This document shows, piece by piece, positions 12,501-58,249 of a stretch of 64,000 bases of DNA. The DNA lies in the NCBI GenBank assembly GCA_015680685.1, contig MNCI01001186.1:240710-304709 (forward strand), given 5' to 3'. Numbering within the stretch: the stretch's first letter is position 1; the number at the start of each line of letters is the position of its first letter. The notes under the pieces are model-generated. The model ran no database searches, was not told the origin of the DNA, and saw only the letters and a list, made by a program, of their open reading frames with translations. A program made the translations under genes and the position numbers. The DNA comes from Gnetum montanum. Its lineage: Eukaryota > Plantae > Gnetophyta.

Positions 12501-14120
12501 TGCTTGTTAGGAACTAGCATCGCCACCGTTTTCAATTCCTATAGCCAAAGTTCCCAAACTTGGGCCCCATAGAAGTTAGTCAACTACATGCCTATGGAAG
12601 GAAAAATCATAGTAATGCTCCAAATAGAAAAATCAAGTAGGGCCATATGGGATTTTGCCAAAATTTCTAGAACCCCTACACGTCCCTAACACAACATGAG
12701 TTGCAAATTCCATCCCTCCCATTAAAGGTGAAATGCCTCTACACTCTACAACTTTGTTTCTTGTAGAAAAATAACTTTACAATCCTTAGTGAAAATAATT
12801 TCTTTCAAGGTATTTATTTTATAGGATGTACCCTAACCTTGATAGTTCCATGAAAGAACTTTCATGGATGACCCGCATTATGCCTTTAGTAGACCTCTTT
12901 TAAGGTTTCCTGGATTCCCAAATCAATATTCAACTATGTCTGCTAGCCATGAGCAAGCTGACTGGAAGGTCAACTAGTTTACTTAAGCCATGTGAAAGAG
13001 TTCCAATGTCCTCTATCCTAACAAGAAAGTTTCCCAAGCCCACAGGCTTGGGCAGCATCAAATCCATCATGTTGGACATAGGTCTCTCATGAATAATTGA
13101 AACACAATCATCTAATGGGGGGAGCTCCATCTCCTTTTTGGTTGGGGATTTGATCAAGGATGGGACATAAGGCTTCTATTCCTACCCACCCCACCTTCTC
13201 CCACAACTGATCACTTCATTTCCTTTAAACTAGCTGGCTAGGTTTGTGGGTGTCCCCTACACCCCACTTGAATCGACTCACCATCTTTGAGTCCCTACAC
13301 CTTAGTCTTGGTAGGCACCTTTCCTTTGCCCAAAAAATGATAGGTAACTATCCCTTGCCCGTTTTTTCGACAAATAGTACATCCATTTCCTAGTGAAGCA
13401 TGAGCTTGTTGCTCTTCTTCCAGATTTTTGTACTCAACACTAGTTTTCTCTACACTACTTGGAAAATCAAAAATTATTTCTTTAACTAGATATTTGGGAG
13501 ATAAGGACCTCCACACATAGAACTTAGTAAAACCCATTCTCTCCATTGAGGTAGTGAAATGGTCAAAGGAGAGGAACCCTCCAAATAGACTAGATAGAGT
13601 TCTTAGGAAATCCAAGTTTCACGTCTCCTAAACAATCCTAGAGATGTGTATCTAAAACGGTGCCTTGAAAACTCCTTCCTTAAAGCAGTCATTTAAGGAA
13701 ACCTAGTTTAGCTAAATACAAACAACAAGAGCTACTTAGACATACTACGAATTTCCACGTCTTTTAATCCCTAAGATTTAGAGGCCCATTTTTGAATTAA
13801 GTCAAGCCTAGGTCAGGCCCCTGATGAAAGAAACTTGCATATTAGGCTGTGGTATGAACCAACTCCCCTAAGGGCCTTCAAACCTAAAGCCTCATCATCC
13901 CTTCTTGATGGAAGCAAGCCTTTATTCCCCCATCACTGGGTCTCCATCTCACCCCCAATGCACCTAATGCACCTAACCCTAACCTAATGTCATTGCCTCT
14001 TCTTGCATCACCATTCAACTAGAAAACTCCTTCCTTAAAGTAGCCATCACTAACCCTAGTCTAGTTTGCTTCGATCCCATCCATGCTCCCTGCACTCCTG
14101 GCCATAGCTCCCCTTATCGA
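9540..14120 (-). mobile_element. L1-clade LINE, near full length and decayed (ORF1 ~12870-14030; ORF2 ~9540-12865)
   Basis: APE start MKVLSWNYQG...IFLQETK; RT motifs LKLNINKAYD, GLR*GDSLSLLLF, YYVDDAML; zf-RVT-like CIVYQVDELLWHLVDHCKW; ORF1 zinc knuckle CTICRKNG. Confidence 0.9.
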
Positions 14121-14255
14121 CTACTTTAATAAGTTGCAAAATTGCAACAGTTGGTAAAAGTTCAAGAAAAATTCATTGGAAAATTTTTGTAATATGTAAA
14201 ATAAAAACTTCAAAGATTTTGATATTAATTCTAGATAGGATAAAATAGTACATAT

Positions 14256-14330
14256 ACAATGAGGTTTTAGCTTAGTGGTAAGAGTCTTGGCTAGGAATAC
14301 CCAAATCACAAGTTCATTTATAGTGGCCTA
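14256..14330 (+). mobile_element. tRNA-like head of a SINE-type repeat
   Basis: TAGCTTAGTGGTAAGAGTCTTGGC (A box) and a degraded B box; similar to the copies at 20712, 21137 and 21370. Confidence 0.5.
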
Positions 14331-14899
14331 CGTTAAGCTATGTACAAAAATAATGTTGTAAAAGGAATCTTGAAATTGGTCTGATAGATCTAAAGGGTCT
14401 TAGTGAATTAAATAAAAATTTAGTTTTAGATTTATATAAATATAATAAGTGTATAACTATATAAATGTAACATGCTGTGAATAAATTCCTTGATTTTATT
14501 GGTACCAATATATGCTATACATGTCACTAACTCAAAATATTGTAGTATTCTATATATCATCATCTTTGCAATTCTATGCTTGTTTTTAATGTAAAAACCT
14601 ATAATTTTTTAATGAAATATTATATTTTTTTCTAATAAGGAATTAGCATTTTTATTGTTTAAAATTTTACAATCAAATTTTTTTAGAAACTTGTGCCAAT
14701 TATTAAAAATATTCAATAAAAATTAGAAAGTTATTGTTGGCACATTTTGGCCATTTCATGGAACAGGATTAGATGATTTAGAACATTATTGTAAAGCACA
14801 ATGAGCTGAAAGACCTGTGCACTAGTGATAAAAAATTGAAGGAGAAGCACGTAACTGAGGAACCTGTGGCACTCCTCCATTTCTAACCACTAATTCGAA

Positions 14900-15349
14900 T
14901 TGGGTAATCATGGGCACTGTTGCAGCCAGAAAAAAAAACCCTACAACACTTGGGACATCTAATTTCTGGATTGCTCATGATCATTAACTATGTGTCATCA
15001 TCGGATGAATCCCAATTCATCGAGTCAGTGGGGCATAGGCACAGATTACATGGGTTTGTAGTCTTGCTTTCTTACTTCATTTTTGGAACCTGCACACCAA
15101 TTCCTTATGGTCTATCATTCTAAAAGAGCCATAAGATTCTCAAAAAGTTCATTCTGAGAAGTGGATTATCTTTGATAGCGATCATATTTCTTACTCTGAG
15201 CAAAGCTCGAGTTAGCGGGAGATCGTACATTCGGACCCTTGTTCTGTACCTAGTCACTCGCTTTTGGGCTTCCATTGCAATTTGCAAGCTTCCTTGCAGG
15301 AGAATATATTAAAAAACTATTACAGAAATGGGGCATCAAGCTGGACTAG
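14900..15349 (+). pseudogene. Captured C-terminal fragment of a membrane-protein-of-ER-body-like (MEB-like, VIT1/CCC1 family) gene
   Basis: LGTSN/LISGLLMII...HGFVVLLSYFIFGTCTPIPYGLSF*KS...LSLIAIIFLTLSKARV...SYIRTLVLYL...(frameshift)FASFLAGEYIKKLLQKWG matches the recalled MEBL pattern [78 protein letters not shown]. Confidence 0.75.
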
Positions 15350-15759
15350 AATTTTTGATTTTTACATTTCTGCCACATTCTAAAATCCACATTAGTGTCG
15401 CTGATGGAAGAGGCAGAAAAATGCAATGAAGCAAATGGAGGAAGATGATGTTTCCATTATACCAGGGGTTTAACAACAGTGTGGGCCTCCTGTGTTTGGC
15501 CAAAGTTCCATGAAACAATCATCCTAACATATGCAGAGCTTGAAGGGATGATGAAAGCCCATTCCATCACGGAGCTATGGAGGCAACTAAAAAAAATGCT
15601 AGCATGAGAACAATGAAACAAAACAAAGATGGATAGTTGCAGTGATTCCATTTCTTCATGGGTGTTAACTATTTTGTCTGGGGGCTTCGCTGTGGGCATC
15701 ATGCTTTCTTTCATGATTGCTCCAAGAAGTTAGCGGAAAATAATGGCCACCGATGGATT

Positions 15760-16571
15760 TAACCCAGGAATCAAACACAGCCACAAACGCAGGCACAGGC
15801 ACAGGTTCAGGTTCAATCTCAGAATTAAGCTCAGGCTTAGACTCAGGTTCAGGCTCCGTCGGTCCTGCCTCCGAAACAATCAAGGTTACGTATCTTTCTG
15901 TTTCCTGCAAAATCATCTTGCGATGAGTGCTCAAGTACATGTTCCAGTTTGGGGCCGTTTTTGGACTCTTCTAAGAAAGAGGGTTGGTTCGTCAACACTC
16001 TCAATGGCACGCCAATGCAGGGGTAGGCTTTGACGTGAGGCATGTTGGAGGGATCATCTGTTGTTTCAGAGGTTCCCGATTTCCTCTTCAACTTTGATAA
16101 TCATGACTGGGATGATGCCACTACCACCACTACCAAGAACAATCCTAAATTTTCTGCTACTGCGGCGCCTACGAGGTTGAAATTTGCATAGGAAAATATG
16201 CAGTGTAATCTGCCGTCGGATGTGCATTCGGCACTGGATTCTCCGATAATGATGATGTTGGAGACGTCCTCATTTGGATCAACATCGTTGGCACCCTTGC
16301 TGGTGAATTTTCCCCCGGTTAAGGTCAAACTTGATCCTCCCCCACAACAGTAGAATCAAAACTAGAACTAAAATCAAAAAACTTGTTCTCTTCCTTCTGA
16401 TGTAGTAGCGCCTCTTTCTTCTAATGTAGCAGCGCCTACTGATCTTCGGTATCTTTTTGATGAATCTGTCTACCACCACGATGATGATGGGTTCTTCAAT
16501 GCTACCCATGATATGGGGCTTAGGTCACAAGATCCTAGATACTTTGAGGATCACTTTGAAAAATTCAAAAT
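15760..16571 (+). pseudogene. Captured fragment of a plant PB1-domain (octicosapeptide/Phox/Bem1p) protein gene
   Basis: One frame with CAR>TAR-type stops: RLRIFLFP (15883), SSLGPFLDSSKKEGWFVNTLNG, SSVVSEVPDFLFNFDN, DVHSALDSPIMMMLETSSFGSTSLAPLLVNFPPVKV. These match recalled motifs RLRLFLF, WFVDALNG, SEVPDYLFGLD, DVHSxPDSP..TSSFGSTSS.PS..NLPPIRV. Homology after ~16340 is weaker. Confidence 0.85.
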
Positions 16572-16661
16572 GATAGTATTCTAGGGCAATGCTATGAAAT
16601 GCCGGTGGGATATGTGCAGATTCCTATGGGAATTGCAGGGCCTCTATTGCTTGATGGATTC
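16572..16661 (+). pseudogene. HMGR: Captured 30-codon fragment of HMG-CoA reductase
   Basis: [30 protein letters not shown] versus the plant HMGR motif [29 protein letters not shown]. Confidence 0.9.
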
Positions 16662-16960
16662 AGTTGAGAAATATGTCTATCCAATTGTTGGTATTTGGTT
16701 TATCATTAACATGGCTTCAGCATCATTCATTTTGCTAAAATTTGTTAAGCCCATTATTTTACGTCAACATCCTTTCCTTATCCACTTTAAAAAGGGGTGT
16801 TTTTATTCACAAAGGAAAGATATTTAAGGGACTTTTGTATAGCATCCTTTGTGAAGAAGACATTTGGCTATTATCCCTCTTATTCCTATGAAAGCTGTAA
16901 CTTCCTATGATAGTTACAACTATGATATTTGTAACTAATTTTTATTTTGATTACCATGAA

Positions 16961-17230
16961 GACACTTGGCAACTAAAAAGGCCACTTGTCAACTATAGCC
17001 TTTTTGTCTCCATGGTGACCACTTGGCAACTGAATAGGCCACTTGTCAATTGAAAGGGCCACTTGGCAACTAAATGGGACACTTGTTAGCTGTGGCTTTT
17101 TTATCTCTATCGTGGTTACAACCACCCAAAATTTTTGTAACTTACCTAACTTGTTGGGCAAGTTACTTGGGAGAGAAGTTAGCTAAGATATTTTTGAATA
17201 TGTAACTACCTTTTGAACCCTATAAAAAGG
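16961..17230 (+). promoter_or_regulatory. LTR-type promoter: tandem ~20-bp (G/C)CACTTG(G/T)CAACT repeats followed by a TATA box
   Basis: About six copies of the motif at 16961-17090; CTATAAAAAGG at 17220. Confidence 0.6.
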
Positions 17231-20200
17231 CTTCAGGGGTAAGAAGAAAAAACATCATCATCACAAGGGAAACACACTTGGGGAATACTTGGGCTCTCAC
17301 TTGGAGACACACTTTGGGTCTTGGGAAGAGCATTTGTTAAGAAGAAAGTGTGAAAGATTGCTTGTAAGATGACTTGCTAAAGAAAAAATTTCAGCCTCTT
17401 TGTCATAGTCCTGTGAGTTATGCTTATTATTTTTTATTTTGTTTAAATTGTTTGGCTAGTGGTTTAGATAGTATCATCCTTGACAAGTAATTTTGGGATT
17501 TTTAGATTGCTTTTATTGTTCTTGTTGCATGATAGAAATTTCTATTAAATTTTTACCATAGAAGCACTTGTGTTTAAAAGCCTTAAGAGCATTTTAGTAG
17601 TAAATTTTATTATTGTGCAACATATAAGAACTGCTATTGATATTGTTGTAAGAGAGCCTCTGCTTGTAGTCATGCCATTGAACGATTCAATAGTCAAGAG
17701 GATTCAGAAAATCTTTGGTATTTTGATAGGACCAGAATAGCTTCTTTTTATCTTTAAAGTGAATCTCCATGGTATTTCAATCAGAAATTGTCAAGTCTTT
17801 TGAAGGTTCTATTGAATGCGATTGTTGACATCCATTATCTAGCCAAAATGGAGTCTCATACGTGATAGTTTACACAAAATTTTTTTGGTAGCATAGTAGG
17901 ATTGTCTTGAAGAAATTGCTTATTTGAGCCTTGGAAGTTTGAACAATTCATAGTTATTGAATTTGGGATAGCTTTATTGCGAAGTGTTTACTCGTATCAT
18001 TTTACCTTATTTAAATATTTGAGATCTTTACACAAATCTGCTTTCTTTTTCTCTTATCTCTAATTTCCATTGAATCTCGCTCTACTTCTAGTTTTCTTGT
18101 GAAAATTTTTCTTTCTTTGGGGAAAATTAGAAGTAGATTCGCAGAGTTATGCTCAAATGTTTTTGCAAAATTTTATTTGTTACAAGTAGGTATTATAAGG
18201 ATCGCATAGACTAGGCAATTGAACAAAATAGGAACTCTCAACAACTCACAGTACTTGGCAAAGTTGGTTGAATCTCTTTAAGATAAGTCATTTGTAGTTT
18301 ACACACAACGCAATCATTTCATATTTCACAACCACACACCACAACAACACACACACATACTCATATTAACTACTGAGTCTATTTGGAGGTATCTGGGCCT
18401 TGGTGTTTCCAGAGACCAGCAAGCACCTAAATCCTATTCGAGGACACTCGTTGGTGGTCGCGTCCCAAACGGTTGCCAACAATTATAAAGTATTTTATTC
18501 CTAAATGTTAAGGAGTTAATTTATAATGCGTTACCTAGGACATGACCCTAGGTTGACATGTCAAGCAAAGGGTCGTGTTACCATGCTTTGATCTTGGTTC
18601 CTTTTTTTTAGTGTTGTAGGACCCTTAATAACCGCCCTCTAAAGATCAGTACAATTTTTTTAATCCTCTAAAAACATGGAATTATACTTACATTAACAAC
18701 TAATAAGGATGTAACTCATAATGATGGGATGATTACAAGGCCTACATAACTTTCTCTCATTAGACTTAACAACTTGTTGATAGAATTAAACTTTATCATT
18801 TCTCATAATTCTAAGGATTGATGCAACTATTGCATATAATCTAACTTTAGTAGCACTATGACATTGTAAAAAAATAGCATTATCAAAGGTGATTGCTAAC
18901 ACTTTTCATCACCTGCGAAGCTAGAAAACATCAAACATTTGTGTGACTCACTTGTTTCAAGTTTTATTTTACAAGCAATACTAATGAATATGGTTGGATG
19001 AACTTCTAGTCCTCTGCTAGGTTTCCACTATACAAGATCATTTAATCTATAATAGGCTTTAAATGATGGCTAGTAATAAAAAATATATAGGTTTTAATAA
19101 CTTTACCCATGCAATGTAGCATTGCATTCCCACATTGAGGGTCATCTAGCTCAAAGAATCTGATCACCATTTGACCATGAGTTGGATTATCTTAGGGTTT
19201 TAAACTACACAAACAAGGCTTGGCTCAACCATCATCTTTGGATTACACTTTGATATAACCCCAAGATAGGTGACCGAGGATCATACATGAGGTGGGTACA
19301 CACTTACGAATGATGCTTGGATCATTGAAAATCTTTGGATGTTGTACAACTCAACCTTCTTGGGATTTAATGGCTCAAGATATTAAGTTCAAGTAAGCAT
19401 ATGTACAAGTAGGGTTGGATAGTTGTGCTTATCTCTACATCTAGGGAAAGGTATATGCAAAATAAATAAACAATGCAACCCATCTATTCAAGTTGTGGGG
19501 ATGAATATATTATTATTAGAATGATTAGTTAAGGATACCTAAAAATACTACATGTTTCACACAATGCACACCAATGAAATGCATCATCCACCTAATTGTT
19601 AACTATGAGTTTAGGTGAATTGCCTATCCTAGGTCCCAAAGGGCTTCTAACCATAATCCATGTAGGTTAATTCTATGGAAGGTAAATAAATATGCATGAC
19701 CACACATATTTTCTTTCTTTCTTTCTTTTGCAAAAATAAAAAAATATGATTGCTAATAAATAAATGGGGTTAGCACATTGTAGCAAAAATAAATAAACAA
19801 TATTCACTTACAAGAAGAACTCTAGCTTTCCACGATGCAATATTCCCATCATATAAATGAAAGAAGTCATGGTGCATCTCAAGTATATTTTAAATGTCAT
19901 ATAAGAACTAGCTCACATCATACAATGGAGAGAGTTACAATAGTTAGGGTTTTTTTTTCATAGGACAATTACCCAATGTTTTCCTCTATTTTCAGACATC
20001 CAAAATTGGGCAAAACAAAGTCTAAAAGTAGGGCCTAAATTTTTAGCAATCAAATCTATGTTTAAGGGAGATTGAGGGGCTTGAAAATAAATATGAGATT
20101 ATAATCTACATAGCTCAATGGAGTTGGGATTTAACAAGGTTGTGTTTTCTTGTGTTTTGTTTCTTTATTTTTTTCCTCATAGCCTAAGATGTCTTTTAAG

Positions 20201-25248: not shown

Positions 25249-25772
25249 TGTAACATCCCGTTCCCAAATGTTGTGGAAAACATCAAATATACATTATATT
25301 AGACATTATGTGTACGAAGATAATGTGGCAAACATCAAATATGTGTAACATTCAACATTAAGTGTGAAGAAAATAATAGAGAAAGTGCAAAAGAAAAGAG
25401 ATAAAAAAAATGCTTTATTGATGTGAAATAGTGTATCTGGGTCATGCTTTGAGTGTTTCTTTAGATTATCTTCCTTCAGAATCTATCCCTTAGAGGCTAT
25501 TTAGCATTGCCCTACTTCACCTAGTACTTGTTACTCGTCTTGTATTAGCTCTACAACTCTATGCTGATATAACCTCTAATACTTAAGTATAAATACTTTA
25601 GGTTAAACCCCAAAATGCCATCTCGAGAACCATGTCCATTATTAAAATGTGCCCTTTAGGGTCTTAATTAGAACTTGCTCTTTTGATTCTTGTTACAATA
25701 ATCACATGATTAGTTATGAAGAGATATTATCTTTGTTATGTAGCAACACCATCTGGGAATGCAAAAATTATA
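25249..25772 (-). mobile_element. Solo LTR of the 32575-36861 family, nested in a 3' LTR
   Basis: Reverse complement of the LTR at 32575-33146; TSD GTCAT (25244-25248, 25773-25777). Confidence 0.85.
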
Positions 25773-32479: not shown

Positions 32480-35400
32480 TGTTGATATCTTAGTTACAAT
32501 ATTGTAGCTCTACATATGTCATTGTAGATATGATGTAGTGGGCCTAAGGTACAAGTTTTGTCCAACAATTAGTCTATAACATCCCCATTTCCAAATGATG
32601 TCATTGCATAATGAAGATGATGTCTCTTAATAACTAATCTTGAGATTAGTGTAACAAGCCTTGAAAAGAGTAGTTGTAATTAAGACCTAAAAGAACATAT
32701 TGTAATAATAGAAATGTCTCTTGAGATGACCTTTGAGGGTTTTACCAAAGGTATTTATACTCGAGCATTAGAAGTCATATTAACATGGAGTTGTGGAGTT
32801 GGTAAATATGAGTAATGGGTACTAAGTGAAGCAGGATAGAAAGAGGACTAGCCATCATTTCTAGCCAATTGTAGGCCTAACCGGGGTGGAAATTTTGGAT
32901 TGCCTTTAAGGGATAGATGCAAAGTAAAAAAACCCCAAGGAACACTCAGAGCATGATCCAAACACATTATTTTACATTAATAAAGTATTATTTCCTTTTT
33001 CCTTCTGCATTTTTCCTATTATTTTCTTTACACTAAATGTCGAATGTTACAAATATTTGATATTTGCTACATTATCTTCTTATGCATAATGTTTAATATA
33101 ATGTATACTTGACGTTTGCTATGACCTTTGGGAATGGGATGTCACATTTGGTATCAAAGCAAACCACAACACAAGGGCCAATCAAAACCAAGAACCAACT
33201 ATGATTTAATGAAAAAATAAGAAGCCATGAGCTAGAGAGAATCATGGACCGCCACCAAATGTGCCTCATGTTTAAGATGACCCATATAAGCTTAGAAGTT
33301 ATCTTTTAAGCAATTTTTCATGGACAATAGAGTCTAGGACCACACATATACGAGAGGATCATGAACATGTATAATGTTTAGGATAGATCCCACTAACCAA
33401 TAAGATCTTCTTTATGGATACTAGTGATCAAGAAATTTGATTACACCTCACCAAGATTCATCAATCGAAAGATATGTTGGTAAGACAAGAATACACTAAT
33501 CTACATAACTCTTACCTATCTTGTAGTGATATTAGAATGTTAATTGATTAAGGTCATTCTTAAGTACCTTGCTAGGGTATAACTAGAGGGGATAGACCTA
33601 CATCATTTGCAAAATTGTATGATATATTTTTGCCATTTTTATCCAAGAGTCAGTTTATCATTATAATTGAAACCAAGTATCTTACAAGTTATCATGTCAT
33701 GTATACATTAGCCTAGTAATGTCAATTCAACAAAATAAGCTATTTTGGTCATTTCAAATTCTAAAATTCTAACTTGGTTTTAGGACACTAAAACCATGTC
33801 CAATGCGTAGTACTCGTTGAGATGATTCCAACAATACAAATTTCATCTCAATCAAAATCACAGTTTTGGGAGATACTGTTGTTTAAATTTTTCTGGATAT
33901 GAAAACATTATAAAATAATAATAAATTATTAAATTATTTATTTTAAATATTAATAGAAATTATTTTCGTAACGGAAAATTTTCAACATTTTAAATATAGA
34001 CATAAAGTTTAAATATAAAAATGTGAAAAATATTTTTGAAAAGAAAATTTGGCATGTTGGTAGCAATCGATTAAGCCACTTAGTATTGAGATGGGTGGCC
34101 TCTTGGGAAGTATCATTTTCCCTATCCAAAATTTTGGACATCAAAAGCCATAACATTTTGTTTTGGAAGCCTTTTTAAGTGAACAAAGAGTTGTTTCTTA
34201 GAGATTTCAACCTCCCAAATGTGAAGTTAGGTCAGTCCCATAGAGCTCCAAAAAATAGTTTTTTATGCCTTGCCCAACATAATGCCTCAAGACCCCCATA
34301 AACTCATTTTAGCATAACTTGGGCATATAATATTCATTTTTAACATATGAATAGTTACTTCCAACATTTTTCACCTTTTGAACTCAATGGTGAAGTCAAA
34401 TTCATCATTCAAGCATCAAATAATTTAATGATACCTTATATCGTGCCTTGAAGAGACCATAACTTAGACTAACTAATCATGCCTAATAATTTAGTTTGGA
34501 GTAATAAATTTAACCTCTTGGACCTTAAAATCAAGTGCTTAACCTTTGTAGATAGATAGTCTTAGCGTATTAACCCAAAATGTATATTTAGTTACACTAC
34601 AGAGTCATTGTCTTAGGGGGGTAGAAAGGCCATTAAGAATCTAGATAATGTAGCTAGATGTTACTAAACCAAATTAGTTGATAATTCAATTAGTGAACTA
34701 GAATTGTTAAAAATATAAATATCAATTTATCTTGAAACCAAATCACATGATAAAATAACATGGAGAATCATAATCTTGTTTCAACAAGATGTATGATACC
34801 CATGAAGAGAACTAACCTAGGAGAGAATCCAAGAATGAGAATGAAAGTTACAACAGATAATATACTTCCAAGACCCATTGTCAATGAAAGAAAAACAACA
34901 TTTTCTATGACCACCATGGACCTTGGATTGACATAAGTATCAATACCTCGTACATCTTAGTAGAATTTGAAGATTTGAATATTTATGTCTAGTGTGTACA
35001 AGAACTTCTACAATGGAAATTCTCATATCAATTCCAAATAGACTTTGAAAAGATATGATCTCTAAAATTTTAGAACTTTAAATCATGGACAAGAAAGAAT
35101 GTTCAAGGTTCTAGATAAGCCACACACCTTGACATTTATATTAAAAATCAAGTCAAAAAGACATGTATGTCTTAGTAACACATATTTAATTGTCAAATCA
35201 ACATGTTCAAATGTCAAACTTTACCAAGTGGCATACTTGATCAACCATAGAAAGAAAAGTTTGAAGAATAAGTTATTCCTAAGTCATACCAATATCAATA
35301 TAGTGTTATTCATCCTTTGTGAAGACTTCAATGTAAAAGTTGAAAATAGAGTTATCAATTCATAAATTATGGATGTATAAAACAACCCTTGGAAGAGGAA

Positions 35401-37571
35401 TCCAATTTTAAGAAAATGTTTTCATAAATTCAAAATGCAATTCCATTGGGCAATGCATATTTTCCTTACTTTAAATATCCAATAGATAAGTCAAATCTTA
35501 AAATTCAAGAACATGTGATGTTGTTGGATAGAATTCATCAAGAATCACAGTTTATCAATTACACTATCATGATTAATGAAGATGGATCAACATCATTCTT
35601 CATCGAAATCATAGACTATATTTAGTACGATGTCCAATTATTTCAAGCTACCAAGTTGCTAGAGTTAAATTCTAAAGAAGAAGTTGAGAAGAAGTAAAAT
35701 CAAGCCTTGCCATCCTAAACAAGAATATCCAATCATATACATCCTACTATAGAACTATAACTACTTTCATTGATCCCTAAGATTGATTGAGATCAGGGAG
35801 CATCTTAACCTTACTTTTTATCTTATTATTTTCTTTATTGTTTATTTTATATTTTAATTTGATAAGTAAAACATCTAAGGTAATACAAGTTGAGAATAAG
35901 GATTTGCCCCATCTTCACTTGGGTAACTAGATATGAGTTGCACTTTGTGACCTTGGTTAGGATTGGCGATTGGTGGTTGGTAGACCTTTAATTCACTTCT
36001 TATTATTCTCTTAGAGCATGAGGTAAGTATTGATAAAATAAGATTTAATTCTTATATATATATTTATTAATTATATTTTGTTTACAAAACAAGAAAGAGA
36101 ACATTAGGATATAGAGCTTCAAGTCCAAAGAATAAATCAAAGTATTGGAGCANATATAGATATACAACTTCAAGTCCAAAGAAAAAAATCAAATTATTAG
36201 AGGATAGGAGAAAAAAAGGAGCATTAGAACTGGAAAAGATAGTGAATGTTGACTCATTCAAGTATGAACAAAACCTAAGGGGGGGATATTGTAACATCCC
36301 CATTTTCAAATGATGCCACTGCATAATGAAGATGGTCTCTCTTCATAACTAACCTTGAGATTAGTGTAACAAAATCCAAAAAGGGTAGTTGTAATTAAGA
36401 CCTGAAAGGAAATATTGTAATAATAGACATGTTTCTTGAGGTGACCTTTGGGGGTTTAAGCTAAGGTATTTATACTTGGGCATTAGAAATTGTATTAGTA
36501 TGAAGTTGTAGAATTAGTAAAGGCAAGTAATAGATGTTGGATGAAGCAAGACAGAAAGAGGGCTAGCCATATCTTCTAGCTAGTTGTAGGTCTAATCATG
36601 GTGGTTGTGCTGGATTGCCTCTAAGGAATAGATGCCAGATGAAGAAAACCTGAAGGAACACTCAGAGCATGATCTAGATACACTATTTCACTTAATAAAG
36701 CATTCATTCCTTTTTCTTTTTGCATTTTCCATGTTATTCTCTTTATGTTGAATGTTGAATGTTACACATATTTGACATTTACGACATTATCTTCTTATGC
36801 ATAATGTCAAATATAACATATATTTGACATTTTCGATGACATCCAAGAATGGAATGTCACGTAGTCAAATTCTTGCAATTTGTTTTTGTCAAGTTAAGGT
36901 TAGATTAAATGTCCACAATGTGGTGAATTACAATTATAAAAAATATTTATTTGAGTGGATTGTTCCTAGACATAATTCATGAATGATAATAAAGAATGAG
37001 ATTTCTTTATCATTGTAGCATATCACTTAACATAGATTTATTTTCCCTAATGTATACTTTCCTTAAGTCATTTACATTCCTTAAGTGATTTACTATTCCA
37101 ATGTCTATTAGTAAGGCAAAATAAGTACGATCGATTTTGAGCATAATGTGTAATTATTTGGTAACCTAATAGTGACATTGCTTAATTCACTCAATAGTGA
37201 AGTTACTTGGTAATCCAAGTGACAATCACATCAACCTAGGACATGTATGGAAAACTAGGAATGGATACTTATCACCATTGGATAGAATAATTTTACATTC
37301 TCATTGTACTTAGAAATAGAATTTACATCCACTTTCACTATGTTTACACTTAGTGTTATTAAGAGCCAGTAAACATTAGTTATCATGTACCTCACTAAAA
37401 GTTAAACCATATGATTGGCACTTCACTAACTCTAAGTGGAAAGATAACAATCATGAACTTAATATCAACTTGCTAGTATACTTACATTGCCCATCCACAT
37501 ATTATGATCTGGTCACATGTAAACACTTGTGACTTGTATGGTTGAGTGTTGGAATACCCAAACACTCATCA
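32480..37571 (+). repeat. Athila-type 3' LTR split by the nested element at 32575-36861
   Basis: Segments 32480-32574 and 36867-37571 join to give the reverse complement of the 26600-27586 LTR; ends ...CACTCATCA. Confidence 0.75.
32575..36861 (+). mobile_element. Non-autonomous LTR retrotransposon with chromovirus-like termini (572-bp LTRs at 32575-33146 and 36290-36861)
   Basis: T(G/A)TAACATCCC...ATGTCAC(A/G) termini; PBS TGGTATCAAAGC at 33149; PPT AAGGGGGGGA at 36277; perfect TSD TAGTC; no recognisable pol. Confidence 0.9.
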
Positions 37572-40629: not shown

Positions 40630-43600
40630 AATGCACTTTAAAATTCATTTTATAGCAAGAGAAATATCCTAGTTATAACAATTAATAAGGCAAAGTCCTC
40701 CATCTTCTTTGTTACTAGTGTAAATATCACAAGAAACTCTAGAAAAGCCTTTTCTATGTTGCTTAGTAGACCAAAGAAATCAATGGATAATATGATCAAT
40801 TTTATCATAAGAAGTTTTAGAAGGATCCTAATAACAAGAGTAATAAACATGAATTGATTGAAGCATTTTCTTAAATACTAAAACTTTGTCGATAAGGGTA
40901 ACCTTTTTTTCTTTTCATTTATCAAGTTTCTTTTCAATTTTATCAGCCACATAATTTCACAAATTAGTAGGATTAGGCTCAAAGAAAAAGGTATTCTTAA
41001 AATTTTGAAGAAAAAAATATTTTTCAAGGTTTAAGAGTAACCCAATCATCAATAATACCATTACAATAAATAGTATATTTTTGCCAGTTAATCCAAAAAT
41101 CAAATAACCTACAATAATCCTCCACTATAGCTAAAAGAGTATTGATATGTTGCAAAGTATTTTTAATCATAATAAAATAATTATCTACAAAGTACATGTT
41201 AAGAAATTGTGTACCTAGATCATTAATTGAAATTCTCTTAATGATATTCTGATCATAATGTAGATTATGTGAAAGAAAGTCTACAAGAATAATACAAAGA
41301 TAAGGAGCTAGAGGATAATCTTGACAAACTGACCATTGAAGAGAAAAGGAAAAACGTAATTCAAAATTAGTAGCAACTTAATCATTAGCATTTATGATCA
41401 AGGTATAAACAAGATAAATAAAATAATCATAAAATCTTGGTTTATAGAGATAAGAAATAGTAAAATTCCATTTAATCTTATCATATGTTTTGACATAATC
41501 TAACTTAATAAAAGTAATTTTTTTGTTAGTATTAGAAGCCCACTACATTATTTAGATATGTCAACCTTTAACAAAACTAGTATGCTTAAGTTTGATGATG
41601 TCTTCAATAACCTTTGAATTCAAAAAGCAATGAATTTAGCTAAAAATTTATACGTATTATTAAGAATAGAAATAGATGTTCAATTATCAATATGTGGGAA
41701 ATCTCCATTCTTAGGAGGAAGATGAATCACATCTTTATTAATATTTTTACTAAGAGAAAATTTTCTAATGACTTCTTGGAAACCATGAAAAAGATCATCT
41801 CTAGTGATCTTCCAATGCTATTTATAAAATTCAATTTGTAAAATATCAAAACTTAGAGCTTTACCATTTTCTAAACTAACTATCACTATTTTGATTTCTT
41901 TCGATGTAATTTCAACTTCAGGAATACTTCAATGCACTTTTGTTATAAGATAAGTAATATGTGTACTAGAGGCTTGGAAGGTTTCCTTGTTGAAACCTTA
42001 AGAAGAAAAAATTGAAGAAAATTGATTTTCTAAAAAAAATTAATAGTTTTATTATCTTTAATGATGAAATAATTTATATAAAGTGATCTTAATTTAGGTA
42101 CATGTTTCTTTCCTTTTAGAAATTTAAAAAATTTCTTACAAGGTTCATCTTCGATTTTTAGCCAACTCATGTGACTTTTAGTAAGAGCACTTTTAGCTTT
42201 AAAAGAATCCCAACATTGTTTAGCATAATGAGCATTAGCCAAGGCTTTTTGAGTTTCAAAATAAAAGTGATTCGAGTTTAAAAGAATTTTCATTTATTTA
42301 ACAAATTCTTCAAGATCTTCTTCAACTTGATGCTTACACTTAAAAAATTATTTCAAAAATCATTTAGCATAATTTTTTATTCTACAAGTAGTTCATTATC
42401 ACTAATCAATTCAATGAATGTCACTAGTAGACTTTTTTTTCAACATTCCATAAAGACTTCAATATAATTTTTCCACTAAACCTATGAATATATTAGCATT
42501 CATTTGAAAAAGCTCATACATTCAAAAGGAGGAAGTATTAATTCTAGAGAAAATAAGGCTAATAGAAAATGGTTTGACAAAGTAGTATCTCTATGAACTT
42601 TTGCTTTCCTTGTAGACTTTCAAGAGGAAAGATTAGAGATGCAAAATCTATCAAGTCATCAATAAATTCTATCATTTTGTTATTGATAATTACACCAAGT
42701 ATAATTCTTCTCATTTGAATAATGCAGGATTAAAAAGCTAACATTATAAAGAAAATATTTTGCTTTAAAATTGCACCAATCTTCTTTTCCTTGAGAAGAC
42801 ATATTAGGAGAAATACCACTAAGTTTATCTAAATGACTTTCAACCATATTGAAGTTACCTCCAATAATCCAAGGAACTTTAAGCAGAGATAGAACATATT
42901 TCCAAATCTCCAATTGGTATTTTAAATCATTAGGAATATAAATATTACAAAGTCCAAAATCTTATTTCTCACTATATAAGTGATCCAAATAACCCTTTCA
43001 AGTTTGTCAAAACCAAAGTTCAAAACTTTTTTAGTCCAATTTTTATTAACAAGAGTAATAACACCTCATTTATTAACTTCATGAGTAGCAGAAAAAATAA
43101 TGCAATAATTTAAAATGCATTTATCAACAAAACTAATATCATGGACTAAAGTCTTGATTTCTTATAGGAAAAGAAAATTTGAAGATAAATGTCAGTTTGA
43201 AAAATACTACCCTATAATCTTTGCTTGGGACCTATTAGAAAGGCCCTAAACATTCCATGATAAAAGCTAACATTGAGATTTGGGGAAGGATATCCTCATC
43301 CTTAATTTTTCAAGCTCAGCATTTGTCTTACAATTCATATGAATAATAAGCAAAAAAGCATTATTTGATTAAAAAAACATTTGAAATAGTAGTAGTAGTA
43401 GGTAGAAAAGGGGATACCTTTGGGATTTTTAAATTGAAAGTAGTATCTACACACCTAATGTTTTATATTACACTAAGTGAAATTCATTTGCATTAATATT
43501 TCTATTACTAGTCCTTCTAAATTTTTTTTTCTAAAAAGAAATTCCTTTTAGATATCAAGAATCTATTAGCATGTTTAGAATTAAAAGAATTAGTAAAAGA

Positions 43601-47991: not shown

Positions 47992-49639
47992 TATTCCTAC
48001 AATTTACTAAAAACTCATCCTCAAGTTATATATAAATGGACAAAGTTCCATTACAAAAATGTTGGAGTGACCAAGACTATATTAGCTATCATTACAAAAT
48101 TTGAGTGCCACATTATAAAATTTTATTTGAGTAGATGTATTACAAAATGAAAAAAAATATATTGCATAGACATCAAAGTTTAAAAAATTACAGAAGTCCT
48201 TAAAAATTTGTTGATGATGAATCTTCAGGTTATCATTAGCGATGATAGTTTTTTCAACGTCAGTTGTTATGTGGTCTCTTCTCTCTTTATGTAGAACTTT
48301 TTGAAGAATGAACTAAAATTTCTTCTCATCAATCCATGGTTTTCTAAGTCTCAAACATGTGATGTTTCAACTTTAACTCTTTTATCTACTATTTGTCTAT
48401 AGACATGTCCTCATCTTGGCCTCTTTTACTTTTGTTGTAAAAGACCTTCAACCTTAGATATTCCTTTTGGCATCATCTAAAACCACCAAAGGATTAACAT
48501 TAGTTTTGGTAACTTTTTTCTTAGTGATTAACCCTTTTGGATCCTTATTTAGCTCAAAATTTGGGAAAACAAATTTAACATGTAGATTCAAGATGATTAC
48601 AAAATAATGTTTCAAAGGCTCTATGATGAGTGTCGAGGTACCCCTACACTCAACCATATGAATACGAGCGTTACACTCACGATCCGATCAAACTCCGTAG
48701 ACAGACTAGTTGTGGCACCTAGATAGTTAGCCTTAGGTTGCAATTTTCTGTCTTCCCACATGGACTAGTATTATCTTTGTCACATATGGTTTAGTCTAGA
48801 GTGAGGTGTATGATGTGTTCTAACCTAATGCTACTCTTGAAGGTAATGGAAAATAAGATTAACTAAGCTAGGAGGAAAAGGGTAAGAGAATCTAAACTAG
48901 CCTAAGTGCGATGAGCATCCGTTCCTTGATTATCCATACACATCTTGGACTTCGTGCATGACTACCACTAGGATTACCAAGCGCAGATCCTAGGTACGCT
49001 ACTGGGTTACCAAGTAGTCACACTTAAATTCTCGTAATCAAGTCGTACTCATTCTGTGTTCTAACATGAGTTTAAGGGTGAGAGAGACTAATTAGGAAAG
49101 CAGTAAATAATAAATAAATAAATAAATAAACAGAGTGAATGCTGAAATGATGAAGTAATCTCGATCTTTATTGATGGTCATGTGTGTGTCCAAGTACGTC
49201 ACACTCGAATAAAGGATGCCATACAATTACATTCACCACACTATGGGCATACATGGGAAAATAATCTATCTCTAGAGGGATCAAACTGCTAGAGTTTTGC
49301 TACTGTCTAACTCTAATTTCTAATGTCTGAAACAAGGGAGAGCCGCCTCTTATTTATAGCACTCTTAAAAGACTACGATATTACATATGAAATATCCTAG
49401 GGGACAACGTGAGATCACAAGGGATGCGATATCCCGTAGGTAGTATTGCGGCCTATGTGATATCGTGTCCCATCATACCCCCATGATTGAATAAAAACTC
49501 ATCCTCGAGTTACAGTGATTACACAATGGATAGGTATGGGATTATTAGATGGAAAAAGAAATGGGATGATGCCACAGTGTGTGAAGAAAAAAAATAAAGA
49601 CATAACACACAGAATATTCTAACTACAAAAATTTGGAAC

Positions 49640-54394: not shown

Positions 54395-56304
54395 TTAATA
54401 AATGACGACTGGGATCCTTGCATTTTGAAAGTATTTTGGCTTGGTCATATTTACTCCATCAGGTTTCACACACTTGATTATAATAAGCATAGTGGAGCAA
54501 TTTATACTATGTAGTTCCCAGATAATGAGTTGACTTGCTATGATATTTGTGACCATTAAATGGTATGCAAGGATTGGGATGCTACTCTCCATTTTTGTGT
54601 TCCATGGGCAGTATGATTGTTGGAGTGTGAGTTGGTGGTCCTGATGAAGTTACATGAGGCATTGGGTTCAAAGGTAATGGTGCACCACACTGTGGGACTT
54701 ATGCTGGGTTGGAAGATGCAGTGGCCTCGGAATTGTGTTGTCCCTTCTTACAGCCGTGTTTAAAGAAGGGGCTCTTTTGATGTTGAGGGGGCCTCCCACT
54801 GTTGTTAGTACTATTAGAACAAGTGTCATTCATGGGTTGTTGTTGTGGTGTAGGCATCTTAGGAACAATTAGTAGTGATGTAGAAGGAGGAAAAGAATAA
54901 GAATGCTAAAAGTTAGAAGCTGTATAAGATACACAAGGTGGTGGTTGTGTTGGAGGCATGGGTTGATAGTATTCTGAAGAATGGTACTGTGGTGACATAG
55001 AGTATGTTGGCTTAGTTGGAGAAACAGGATGTTGAACAAGATAAGCGTTTGGATTTGGATGATATGAAGGGTGTCTCTAGTCTAAGGGTGGATTCCCCCA
55101 CAACTAGGGTTGTTGTCACTGTGATCGAACATAGTATCTCTGTACGAACTCTAGATGTAACATGTTTTCTCAATGCTCATGTAAATGTAACAATATTGGG
55201 CATTGGCCCTTGGGGTGATCATACAGGCATATGTTGCATTCATACGTATGATTGGTAGTTGAGCTCTTAGTTTCTTTATCCCTTCTTTTCGATTGTCTAA
55301 TGTTTTGTCCTGCTTCTTGGGTTGTTAAAACTCTATCTCCATTAATGTTGATGAATTCTCCACACGTTTGATACGTCCATTCCAACATTTTATTAATCTT
55401 TGCCTCAACCTCTTCTAATGTTTGTTGTGCTAGCAAAGATGATGTTTCCACCTTGAGATTGGTTGATCTCTCCTTTTTATGATCATGGACCTTTGTTAAG
55501 TTGAAGTTTTGGTCTCGTTGATGTTTTTCAACACTCTCCCATCTAGCTAATTCTCCTTCTTCTTTTGTTACCTACTTAATAAGCTCTTGGACTTGATGGG
55601 TTTGTAGTTCGTATAATTAACCTTAGGGCATACATTCCTAAGGTCTCTCTTGTTTCATTACGTAGCCCATCAATGATATGGTACATTAGCCTTTCCTTGG
55701 AAAACCCATGGCCTGGATAGTTGTTTAACAGTGCATAATATCTTTCTAAGGCCATGTCCAAGGGTTCATGTTGTGCTTGTTTCCATCCTTGGATTTGTTT
55801 CCTCAAGGCTGACACTCTTGCATAGATTTGATACTTTTTGTTAAAAACTTCTATCATTGTTGACCAACGTCATATCGAATTTGGGTTTAATGATCTATAC
55901 CATACTTTTGCTTGGTCAATGAGTGTCATAGGAAAGAGCTTAAGTCTTTGCCAACCATTATCAATGTTATTCCATGTGCAGGCATCGTAGAAGGCTTGTA
56001 AATGTTGATGTGGATCTAAGTCATAGCCTCCTAAAAATTTAGGAAAGTTGTTTAAATTAAGCCTAGGTAGACGACTCTCTTTACGATGCCTATGTGAGAT
56101 TCAAACAGCTTCTTGTATTTGCATTAGGCTTGTAGGGGCCAGTATGGGTTCATCATCATTGGGTAAGTTATGCTTTTGTGTGTTGGGATGAAGTTTTTTT
56201 TTGTTCTTTTTTATAAGGAACCCCCACTTCGGGTTGTGTACTCTAATCTTCATCGTTATATAGTTCGTTGGTTCTCCAATGAGCTTCCTCACTAGGTGTG
56301 CCAT
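54395..56304 (-). pseudogene. gag: Athila gag (disrupted)
   Basis: LRKQIQGWKQAQHEPLDMALERYYALLNNYPGHGF...IIDGLRNETRETL (retrotransposon gag domain), then a Cys/His cluster CNICLYDHPKGQC. Confidence 0.9.
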
Positions 56305-58249
56305 TATTATAATCTTGTAGGAGAGGCATTGTTGTGTGTGAATTTATGTGACTTTTTATAATTACTTATTTCTAAGAGATATATTGGTAAGTCCTTTTAT
56401 AGAAACCTTGTATGATATAACTAATCTAGATAACTAGCACCATCCTTGACAATGACGCCCATGATGAGTGGCGAGGTACCCCTACACTCAACCATACGAA
56501 TACGAGCGTTACACGCGCGATCCAGGTGAACTTTGCAGATGGACTAGTTGTGGCACCTAGATAGTTAGCCTTAGGTTACAATTTGCTATCTTCCCATCTA
56601 GACTAGTATTATCTTTTCACGTATGGTTTAGTCTAGAGTGAGGTGTATGATGTGTTCTAACCTAATGCTACTCTTAAAGGTAATGGAAAATAAGATTAAC
56701 TAAGCTAGGAGGAAAAGGGTAAGAGAATCTAAACTAGCCTAAGTGCGATGACCATCCATTCCTTAATTATTTGTACACATCTTGGACTTCTTGCACGACT
56801 ACCACTGGGATTACCAAGCGCAGATCCTAGGTATGCTACTGGGTTACCAAGTAGTCACACTTAAATGCTTGTAATCAAGTCGTACTCATTCCATGTTATA
56901 ACGTGAGTTTAAGGGTGAGAGAGACTAATTACGAAAGCAGTAAATAACAATTAAATAAATAAATAAATAAAGTAAATGTTGCAATGATGAAGTAATCTCA
57001 ATCTTTATTGCCGGTCATGTGTGTATCCAAGTACGTCACACTCGAATAAAGGATGTCATACAATTACATTCATCACACTGCGGGCATACATAGGAAAATA
57101 ATCTATCTCTAGAGGGATCAAACTACCAGAGTTTTGCTACTGTATAACTCTAATCTCTAATGTCTGAAACAAGGGAGAGCCGCCTCTTATTTATAGAACT
57201 AGCGACGGATTGCGATATCGTAGGGGATGACGCGATATTGCATACGCAATATCGTGGGGGATGCGATATCACAGTTGATGTGATATCGCGTACACAATAT
57301 TTCGGCCTATGCGATATCACGTCCCATCACTCTATGATAACAAAAAATGATCAATGTTTTTAAGTTATTTTAATTATTGTAATTATTAGTTACCATAATG
57401 TTTGAAAATGAGGTGTTAGAAAAATTTTTAAAAAAATCACATTTTTAGCCCCCATGACAAATAAGCTTAACTCCATAAGCTTACAAGTTTTTGAACAATT
57501 AAAATCAAAGGTTTGCTTCACAAATGCACTAGAATATTGAAAATCATAAGGTTTAAAAATGACCAAGAAATATTTAATTTGGAGGGTAGTTCAATATAAA
57601 AGCATTAAAAATTAATCAAAATTGATAAGTAGTCTTAAAATAATGCATAAACTTAAAGAAGTTGTCCATGATATCCTTGAAGATGTGATGTTTAGGTTTA
57701 GAGACATGATCAAAAAAATTCATGCAAGTGGGTCCCCCCTAAAGCAAGATCCTACCATAATGCCCTTGTATAACCACTCCTATAGATTATGTGGATACCT
57801 TAGAAGTTAAATGTAAAGCATGTTAACTTATACATGGGCTTTACATTTAACTTATACAATAAATGTAAAGGATTCCAACCAAGGTAGTTGTTATACATTT
57901 ATGGTTGCCCATGATCAATAAATGTAAAGCTCTTACTTATACAATATTTTTGGTTGTATGACTACCTATAACTACATAGTAAATAAGGAAATCTCCTGGG
58001 CATTTTCTTTTCCATGGACTTAAGATTTAAAGAAAAAGCTCTAGGCTCTTGTATAGGTAACATAACTTGGCAATATCCTTTTGGATGTTCATATTAATAG
58101 ATGTTACAACTATCCTTCTCCTTTGAATTTCAATCTACTACCTCTTCTACTATAGTTACTTTCCCTTTTTATTGATAAGTATCCTTTCCTATTTTCTTAA
58201 TTTTTTTCTTTTCTTATCTTGATCAGTTAATCCTACTTGTTGTGCCTTC

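Follow-up and report, generated by a model that had tools for sequence, protein, structure and literature searches.

A 64,000-nucleotide stretch of the Gnetum montanum genome (assembly GCA_015680685.1, contig MNCI01001186.1, positions 240,710 to 304,709; hereafter the window, in whose own coordinates all positions are given) contains a 3.7 kb unit at 14735-18481. With confidence that we place at about even, we read this unit as a solo unit of long terminal repeat (LTR) type from a retrotransposon, which would carry host-gene cargo upstream of its promoter-like part. The cargo block, of 1.7-1.8 kb, holds pieces that lie one after another, all on one strand, and come from two or more unrelated host genes, one from the MEB/VIT family and the other HMGR. 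The original prediction had described a giant solo LTR with pieces of unrelated genes arranged in series on one strand upstream of a promoter, and this arrangement was recovered for these two genes. The case at this locus is a structural one.

The ends of the unit were read directly from the sequence. The 5' terminus (14735-14742, plus strand) is TGTTGGCA, which begins with TG, and the 3' terminus (18474-18481, plus strand) is TGCCAACA, which ends with CA and occurs only once on the plus strand of the whole window. The two form a perfect 8-bp inverted repeat, in agreement with the 8-bp TG..CA termini proposed earlier, and beyond these 8 bp the terminal inverted repeat continues in imperfect form, with 14 of 17 positions matching and one gap. 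The unit is bracketed by a putative 5-bp target-site duplication, GTTAT on the left (14730-14734) and ATTAT on the right (18482-18486), agreeing at four of the five positions; the near-perfect duplication that had been claimed is thus present, and it is significant only when conditioned on the compositional boundary described below.

Analysis of base composition gave independent support to the 5' boundary at 14735, since the maximum-likelihood GC change-point of the segment 14100-15400 falls at 14736 (log-likelihood gain of 18) and so coincides with the 5' terminus. The GC content rises from 16% over the 100 bp left of 14735 to 36% over the 100 bp on its right side. With the boundary fixed at this change-point, the probability of finding a reverse-complement 8-mer together with a duplication matching at four of five positions within 8 kb is P = 0.0068, and for this reason we read 14735-18481 as one integrated unit, probably a single insertion with LTR-type ends and a 5-bp duplication. 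Ends of the TG..CA kind combined with a duplication of this length would imply integration by an integrase of the retroviral type.

The first cargo fragment, at 14950-15349 on the plus strand, was identified by HMMER, Pfam and tblastn as the last ~130 codons of a MEB/VIT-family gene together with its natural stop codon TAG. The HMMER search, run with a 71-residue piece translated from 14908-15123 against 1.84 billion representatives, revealed four proteins of 570-1061 residues that were matched near their C-termini. Three of the four have a C-terminal Pfam VIT1 match, one of them above the gathering score, and a long protein with a C-terminal VIT1 domain is the architecture to be expected of MEB-type proteins. 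In tblastn the last ~130 residues of the four proteins align to 14950-15346 (54% identity; E 3e-35 to P0002, through residues 788-917 of its 917). The alignment is interrupted by a single in-frame stop (15124-15126) and a single frameshift (near 15280), reaches the proteins' own C-terminus and is followed by the TAG at 15347-15349.

A segment conserved upstream in all four MEB-like proteins has no counterpart in 14735-14949, where alignments to this part of the proteins stay at the level of shuffled sequence (local alignment, z < 1.4). Given this lack of upstream homology, the MEB/VIT fragment has a sharp start at ~14950, and the unit's initial ~200 bp are of other origin; this 5'-terminal segment (14735-14949, plus strand) is possibly the element's own 5' end. 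Additionally, a run of eight A residues is found at 15589-15596, 240 bp past the MEB stop, which as weak evidence could represent a poly(A) remnant. PDB searches with the two VIT pieces were uninformative.

The second fragment, at about 16572-16661 on the plus strand, covers ~30 codons of HMGR at the point where the catalytic domain begins. It matches Pfam PF00368 (E 3.5e-6) as well as the plant HMGR1 structures 8ecg and 7uli (E 2e-12 over 30 residues, 226-255 of 7uli), and from the structure of plant HMGR genes we take the patch to lie probably within one exon. Both fragments are in plus orientation, the same strand as the TATA box of the unit. Between them, the cargo at 15350-16571 (plus strand) has no family match, and frame and repeat scans show that stops are scarce on either strand in several frames and that the stretch holds short tandem repeats as well as the A8 run. 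Several stop-free stretches of 80-101 codons are present within 15460-16524, in overlapping frames and on both strands, again with no match to a family. A PB1 fragment had been claimed in this part of the cargo (15750-16560), but PB1 was absent from the Pfam results at E values up to 10 for 15 stop-free pieces from both strands, and a search of the ESM Atlas did not recover it. Of the three gene fragments originally proposed, MEB/VIT and HMGR are confirmed and PB1 was not recovered by these searches.

The 3' half of the unit shows the promoter-like features that had been anticipated for it. Repeat scans detected about five copies of an enhancer-like 20-bp tandem repeat containing CTTGGCAACT at 16963-17114 (plus strand), and a TATA box, TATAAAAAG, was read at 17221-17229 (plus strand). 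Weaker TATA-like sites are found at 17623 and 18194, and downstream of the TATA box there is a single ATTAAA, a candidate polyadenylation signal, at 17544. Counted over both strands, the window has five occurrences of the 8-mer TTGGCAAC, three of them in the 20-bp tandem repeats 5' of the TATA box (16965-17072). One more, as the reverse complement, is part of the element's 3' terminus (18472-18479), and TTGGCA is present in the 5' terminus. A donor-like GTGAGT (17410-17420) and a pyrimidine-rich, acceptor-like ACAAG/TAGGT (about 18185-18195) bracket ~780 bp downstream of the TATA box.

To assign the unit to a class of mobile element, we compared its structure with those of several known types. 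Within 13500-19700 no inverted repeat exceeds 25 nt, and the element has no direct repeats inside it. A Pack-MULE was rejected for the lack of long terminal inverted repeats (at least 100 bp) and for a duplication of 5 bp, not 9-11 bp, and a CACTA element for the lack of CACTA...TAGTG ends and of a 3-bp duplication. A Helitron would have a 5' TC, a 3' CTRR with a subterminal hairpin and insertion at A/T without duplication, whereas the ends here are TGTTGG and CCAACA; a small complete LTR element was rejected for want of internal direct repeats. Since these types, and the GingerRoot type considered further below, are excluded, a solo LTR is the simplest reading of the unit.

Such a solo LTR would have been left behind by LTR-LTR recombination of a retrotransposon, and its layout would be that of a 5' end of its own of ~200 bp, followed by the cargo and then by the tandem repeats and TATA box through to the CA end. 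Should the unit be an LTR, its cargo sits between the end recognised by the integrase and the enhancer/promoter, because it starts ~200 bp inside the 5' end and is located upstream of the repeats and TATA box, a position that would assign it to the U3 region. Retroviral U3 tolerates inserts between the integrase-recognised end and the enhancer/promoter, as in double-copy vectors. We propose that during minus-strand DNA synthesis the reverse transcriptase copying U3 RNA may have switched to co-packaged host mRNAs and back, so that the gene pieces would have landed between these two parts, and that cargo in this place would be copied into both LTRs in each cycle.

The shared sense orientation of the fragments, their sharp breakpoints, the 90-bp size of the HMGR patch and the natural stop with trailing sequence of the MEB/VIT piece all fit template switching to co-packaged mRNAs, which for reverse transcriptase is a reviewed route (PMC13317346). 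Tentatively, and with confidence clearly short of even, we extend this proposal to a plant LTR family whose U3 would serve as a standing acceptor of pieces of host mRNA. Members of such a family would keep fixed ends and a fixed promoter around a kilobase-sized mosaic, which would be re-dealt in each cycle by template switching, copied into both LTRs and left in solo LTRs.

The search for further copies and relatives revealed little. No second copy of the element was found in the window by seed-based repeat finding or by BLASTN with a word size of 9, and no other copy was found in metagenome contigs scanned with a protein pattern and the 3'-terminal 20-mer, or in the viral contigs and prokaryote genome contigs that were scanned. 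Protein-word searches with the open reading frame (ORF) at the 5' terminus and with the ORF spanning 16798 gave no relatives, and none of nine exact ORFs of the window was present in the protein collection. The sole related sequence found outside the window corresponds to 17570-17737 (plus strand): the ORF P0001, of 56 residues and from a Logan contig of another assembly, is equal in length to this part and 79% identical to it at the amino acid level, which indicates that 17570-17737 is repeated somewhere, and nothing beyond that. In addition, no Rfam family or tRNA was detected in or near the element, direct reading showed no TGG resembling a primer-binding site (PBS) after the 3' end (18481), and no paralogous empty site for the flanks of the element exists within the window.

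Several of our results weigh against a solo LTR with cargo in its U3. Neither paired LTRs nor a context with a PBS and a polypurine tract (PPT) was seen in the window or in the scanned collections. The target-site duplication is imperfect, and the terminal signature alone proves nothing, because a blind scan of the window for 8-bp TG..CA inverted repeats spaced 1-6 kb apart, with flanks matching at four or more of five positions, found 16 pairs, while first-order Markov shuffles gave 14.6 +/- 4.4. The 3' boundary has weak compositional support. Some 1.25 kb separate the TATA box from the 3' end, an unusually long stretch for R plus U5, and the TATA-like site at 18194 would leave a more usual 290 bp; the donor-like and acceptor-like sites together with this long distance could point to a leader intron or to another transcription start. 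Finally, the last piece of cargo to be identified is separated from the promoter-like repeats by a PPT-like purine run, in just the place to be expected if an LTR began there.

This purine run, AAAAAGGGG (16789-16797), directly abuts a TGTT (together 16789-16801, plus strand, from direct reading and a scan for purine runs) and marks an alternative LTR start, from which the best surviving of the other explanations derives. The true LTR would then be 16798-18481 (~1.7 kb), and 14735-16797 would be the cargo-bearing 3' internal region of a non-autonomous LTR retrotransposon truncated at its 5' side. The cargo would be internal, a layout like that of Bs1 or of Tat/Ogre elements with their hypervariable 3' region, and the match of the ends at 14735 would be a coincidence. 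Purine runs of at least 8 that end in GGG before TG occur only twice on the plus strand of the 64 kb, TGTT...AACA is acceptable as a pair of LTR ends, the resulting U3 of 450 bp would be ordinary, and there is published evidence of hypervariable regions that separate pol from the 3' LTR (PMC11963269, citing Macas et al. 2009). The coincidence that it needs at 14735, however, joins the GC change-point, the 8-bp inverted repeat and the four-in-five duplication and has a P of ~0.007; moreover, the plus strand upstream holds no retroelement coding sequence, no 5' LTR is present in the window, and the AT-richness is alike in both flanks. We consider this explanation unlikely. As a speculation, the signals at 14735 and at 16798 would both be true if an ancestral LTR beginning at 16798 had been extended by shifted plus-strand priming.

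An origin of the cargo at the DNA level was also considered. Mosaic gap repair is known in plants, and Wicker et al. 2010 (cited in PMC13477047) reportedly gives an example of it. A solo LTR could have received copy-specific filler DNA when a double-strand break in this one copy was patched by synthesis-dependent repair from several unlinked genes, with no family-wide habit involved, a history for which the short patches (90 bp for HMGR) and the sharp breakpoints, both as in plant mosaic gap repair, would be suitable, as would the fact that no other copy with the same cargo was seen in the window or the scanned collections. Against it, the two confirmed fragments point the same way as the TATA box, and the MEB piece closes with its natural stop, ~240 bp and the A8 run, as the 3' end of an mRNA might, so we regard filler DNA as improbable.

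It could also be argued that the boundaries are accidental, and that the locus is a decayed patchwork of pseudogene fragments next to an unrelated repeat fragment, with no single mobile unit. The equal frequency of the terminal signature in shuffled sequence and the heavy degradation across the whole window are consistent with this, but the conditional P of 0.0068, the sharp step in composition at the 5' side and an inverted repeat that is longer than 8 bp all argue for a real unit, and a chance assembly appears quite improbable to us. Least of all do we favour a DNA transposon of non-autonomous type, mobilised by a transposase related to integrases (the Ginger or GingerRoot kind), which is very improbable: GingerRoot elements do have TG..CA ends, make a short duplication and carry pieces of genes, but their terminal inverted repeats measure 100-150 bp and their duplication 6 bp, compared with 8-17 bp and 5 bp here, and in plants they are reported from bryophytes and lycophytes only (PMC6839031).

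The surrounding sequence is AT-rich, plant-like and full of decayed repeats, and the whole 64 kb contains a single ORF of at least 130 residues. A Retrotrans_gag remnant is found on the minus strand at 55579-55869, and direct repeats of ~450 bp (48623-49076 and 56461-56913, 87-94% identity, spacing of 7.8 kb) flank it; these repeats are the LTR pair of a decayed retrotransposon. A weak RVT_1 match (E 1e-3) is located on the minus strand at 41027-41377, adjoined by a stop-free piece at 42683-42961 on the same strand, and the two together are probably a decayed LINE (long interspersed nuclear element). Repeats of ~570 bp at 32577-33145 and 36292-36860 (~82% identity, 3.7 kb apart) have a third copy, inverted, at 25249-25761, and constitute a repeat family separate from the element at 14735-18481.

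That LTR retrotransposons can capture genes is well established (PMC2774510, PMC3726574, PMC13317346), and a survey in maize found no single element with fragments of more than one gene (PMC2774510). Bs1 of maize and the transducing LTR retrotransposons likewise carry pieces of host genes, in the case of Bs1 from several genes, and template switching between co-packaged RNAs is accepted for them. In Bs1 and its like the cargo lies between the LTRs, whereas here it would be inside the LTR and comes from at least two genes. Foreign sequence within the LTR itself, duplicated in each cycle, is found in the Cassandra TRIMs, which are miniature terminal-repeat retrotransposons, with a sequence derived from 5S rRNA, and in BARE-2, with Wis-2 sequence (PMC13317346); in these there is one fixed, promoter-serving insert conserved in the family, in contrast with the kilobase-scale mosaic of protein-gene pieces seen here. 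The hypervariable 3' region of Tat/Ogre/Retand elements is likewise a variable, repeat-prone block just upstream of the promoter-bearing part of the LTR, but this block is internal, upstream of the PPT, and consists of tandem repeats or antisense ORFs, not host gene fragments (PMC11963269, PMC3305785). In a full-text literature search of incomplete coverage, no paper turned up that describes a mosaic of several genes within an LTR.

In plants, DNA transposons and Helitrons receive most of the credit for shuffling gene fragments, and the cargo of LTR elements is thought to be internal and rarely multi-gene. If our proposal is true, cargo held in the LTR would be doubled in each cycle and would persist in solo LTRs beside a promoter, where it could give rise to chimeric transcripts or to small RNAs directed at its donors, here a gene for a MEB/VIT-type membrane protein and HMGR. 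It would also mean that in a natural element the part of U3 from the integrase site to the enhancers can accommodate kilobases of foreign sequence. Serial capture from unrelated genes is likewise a habit of Pack-MULEs, Helitrons, Pack-CACTA elements and GingerRoot, but the unit lacks the ends and duplications that define these elements, and their capture works on DNA and takes introns along (for GingerRoot, PMC6839031). A family with U3 as an acceptor of host mRNA would, if it is real, be the RNA-level counterpart of Pack-MULEs and Helitrons.

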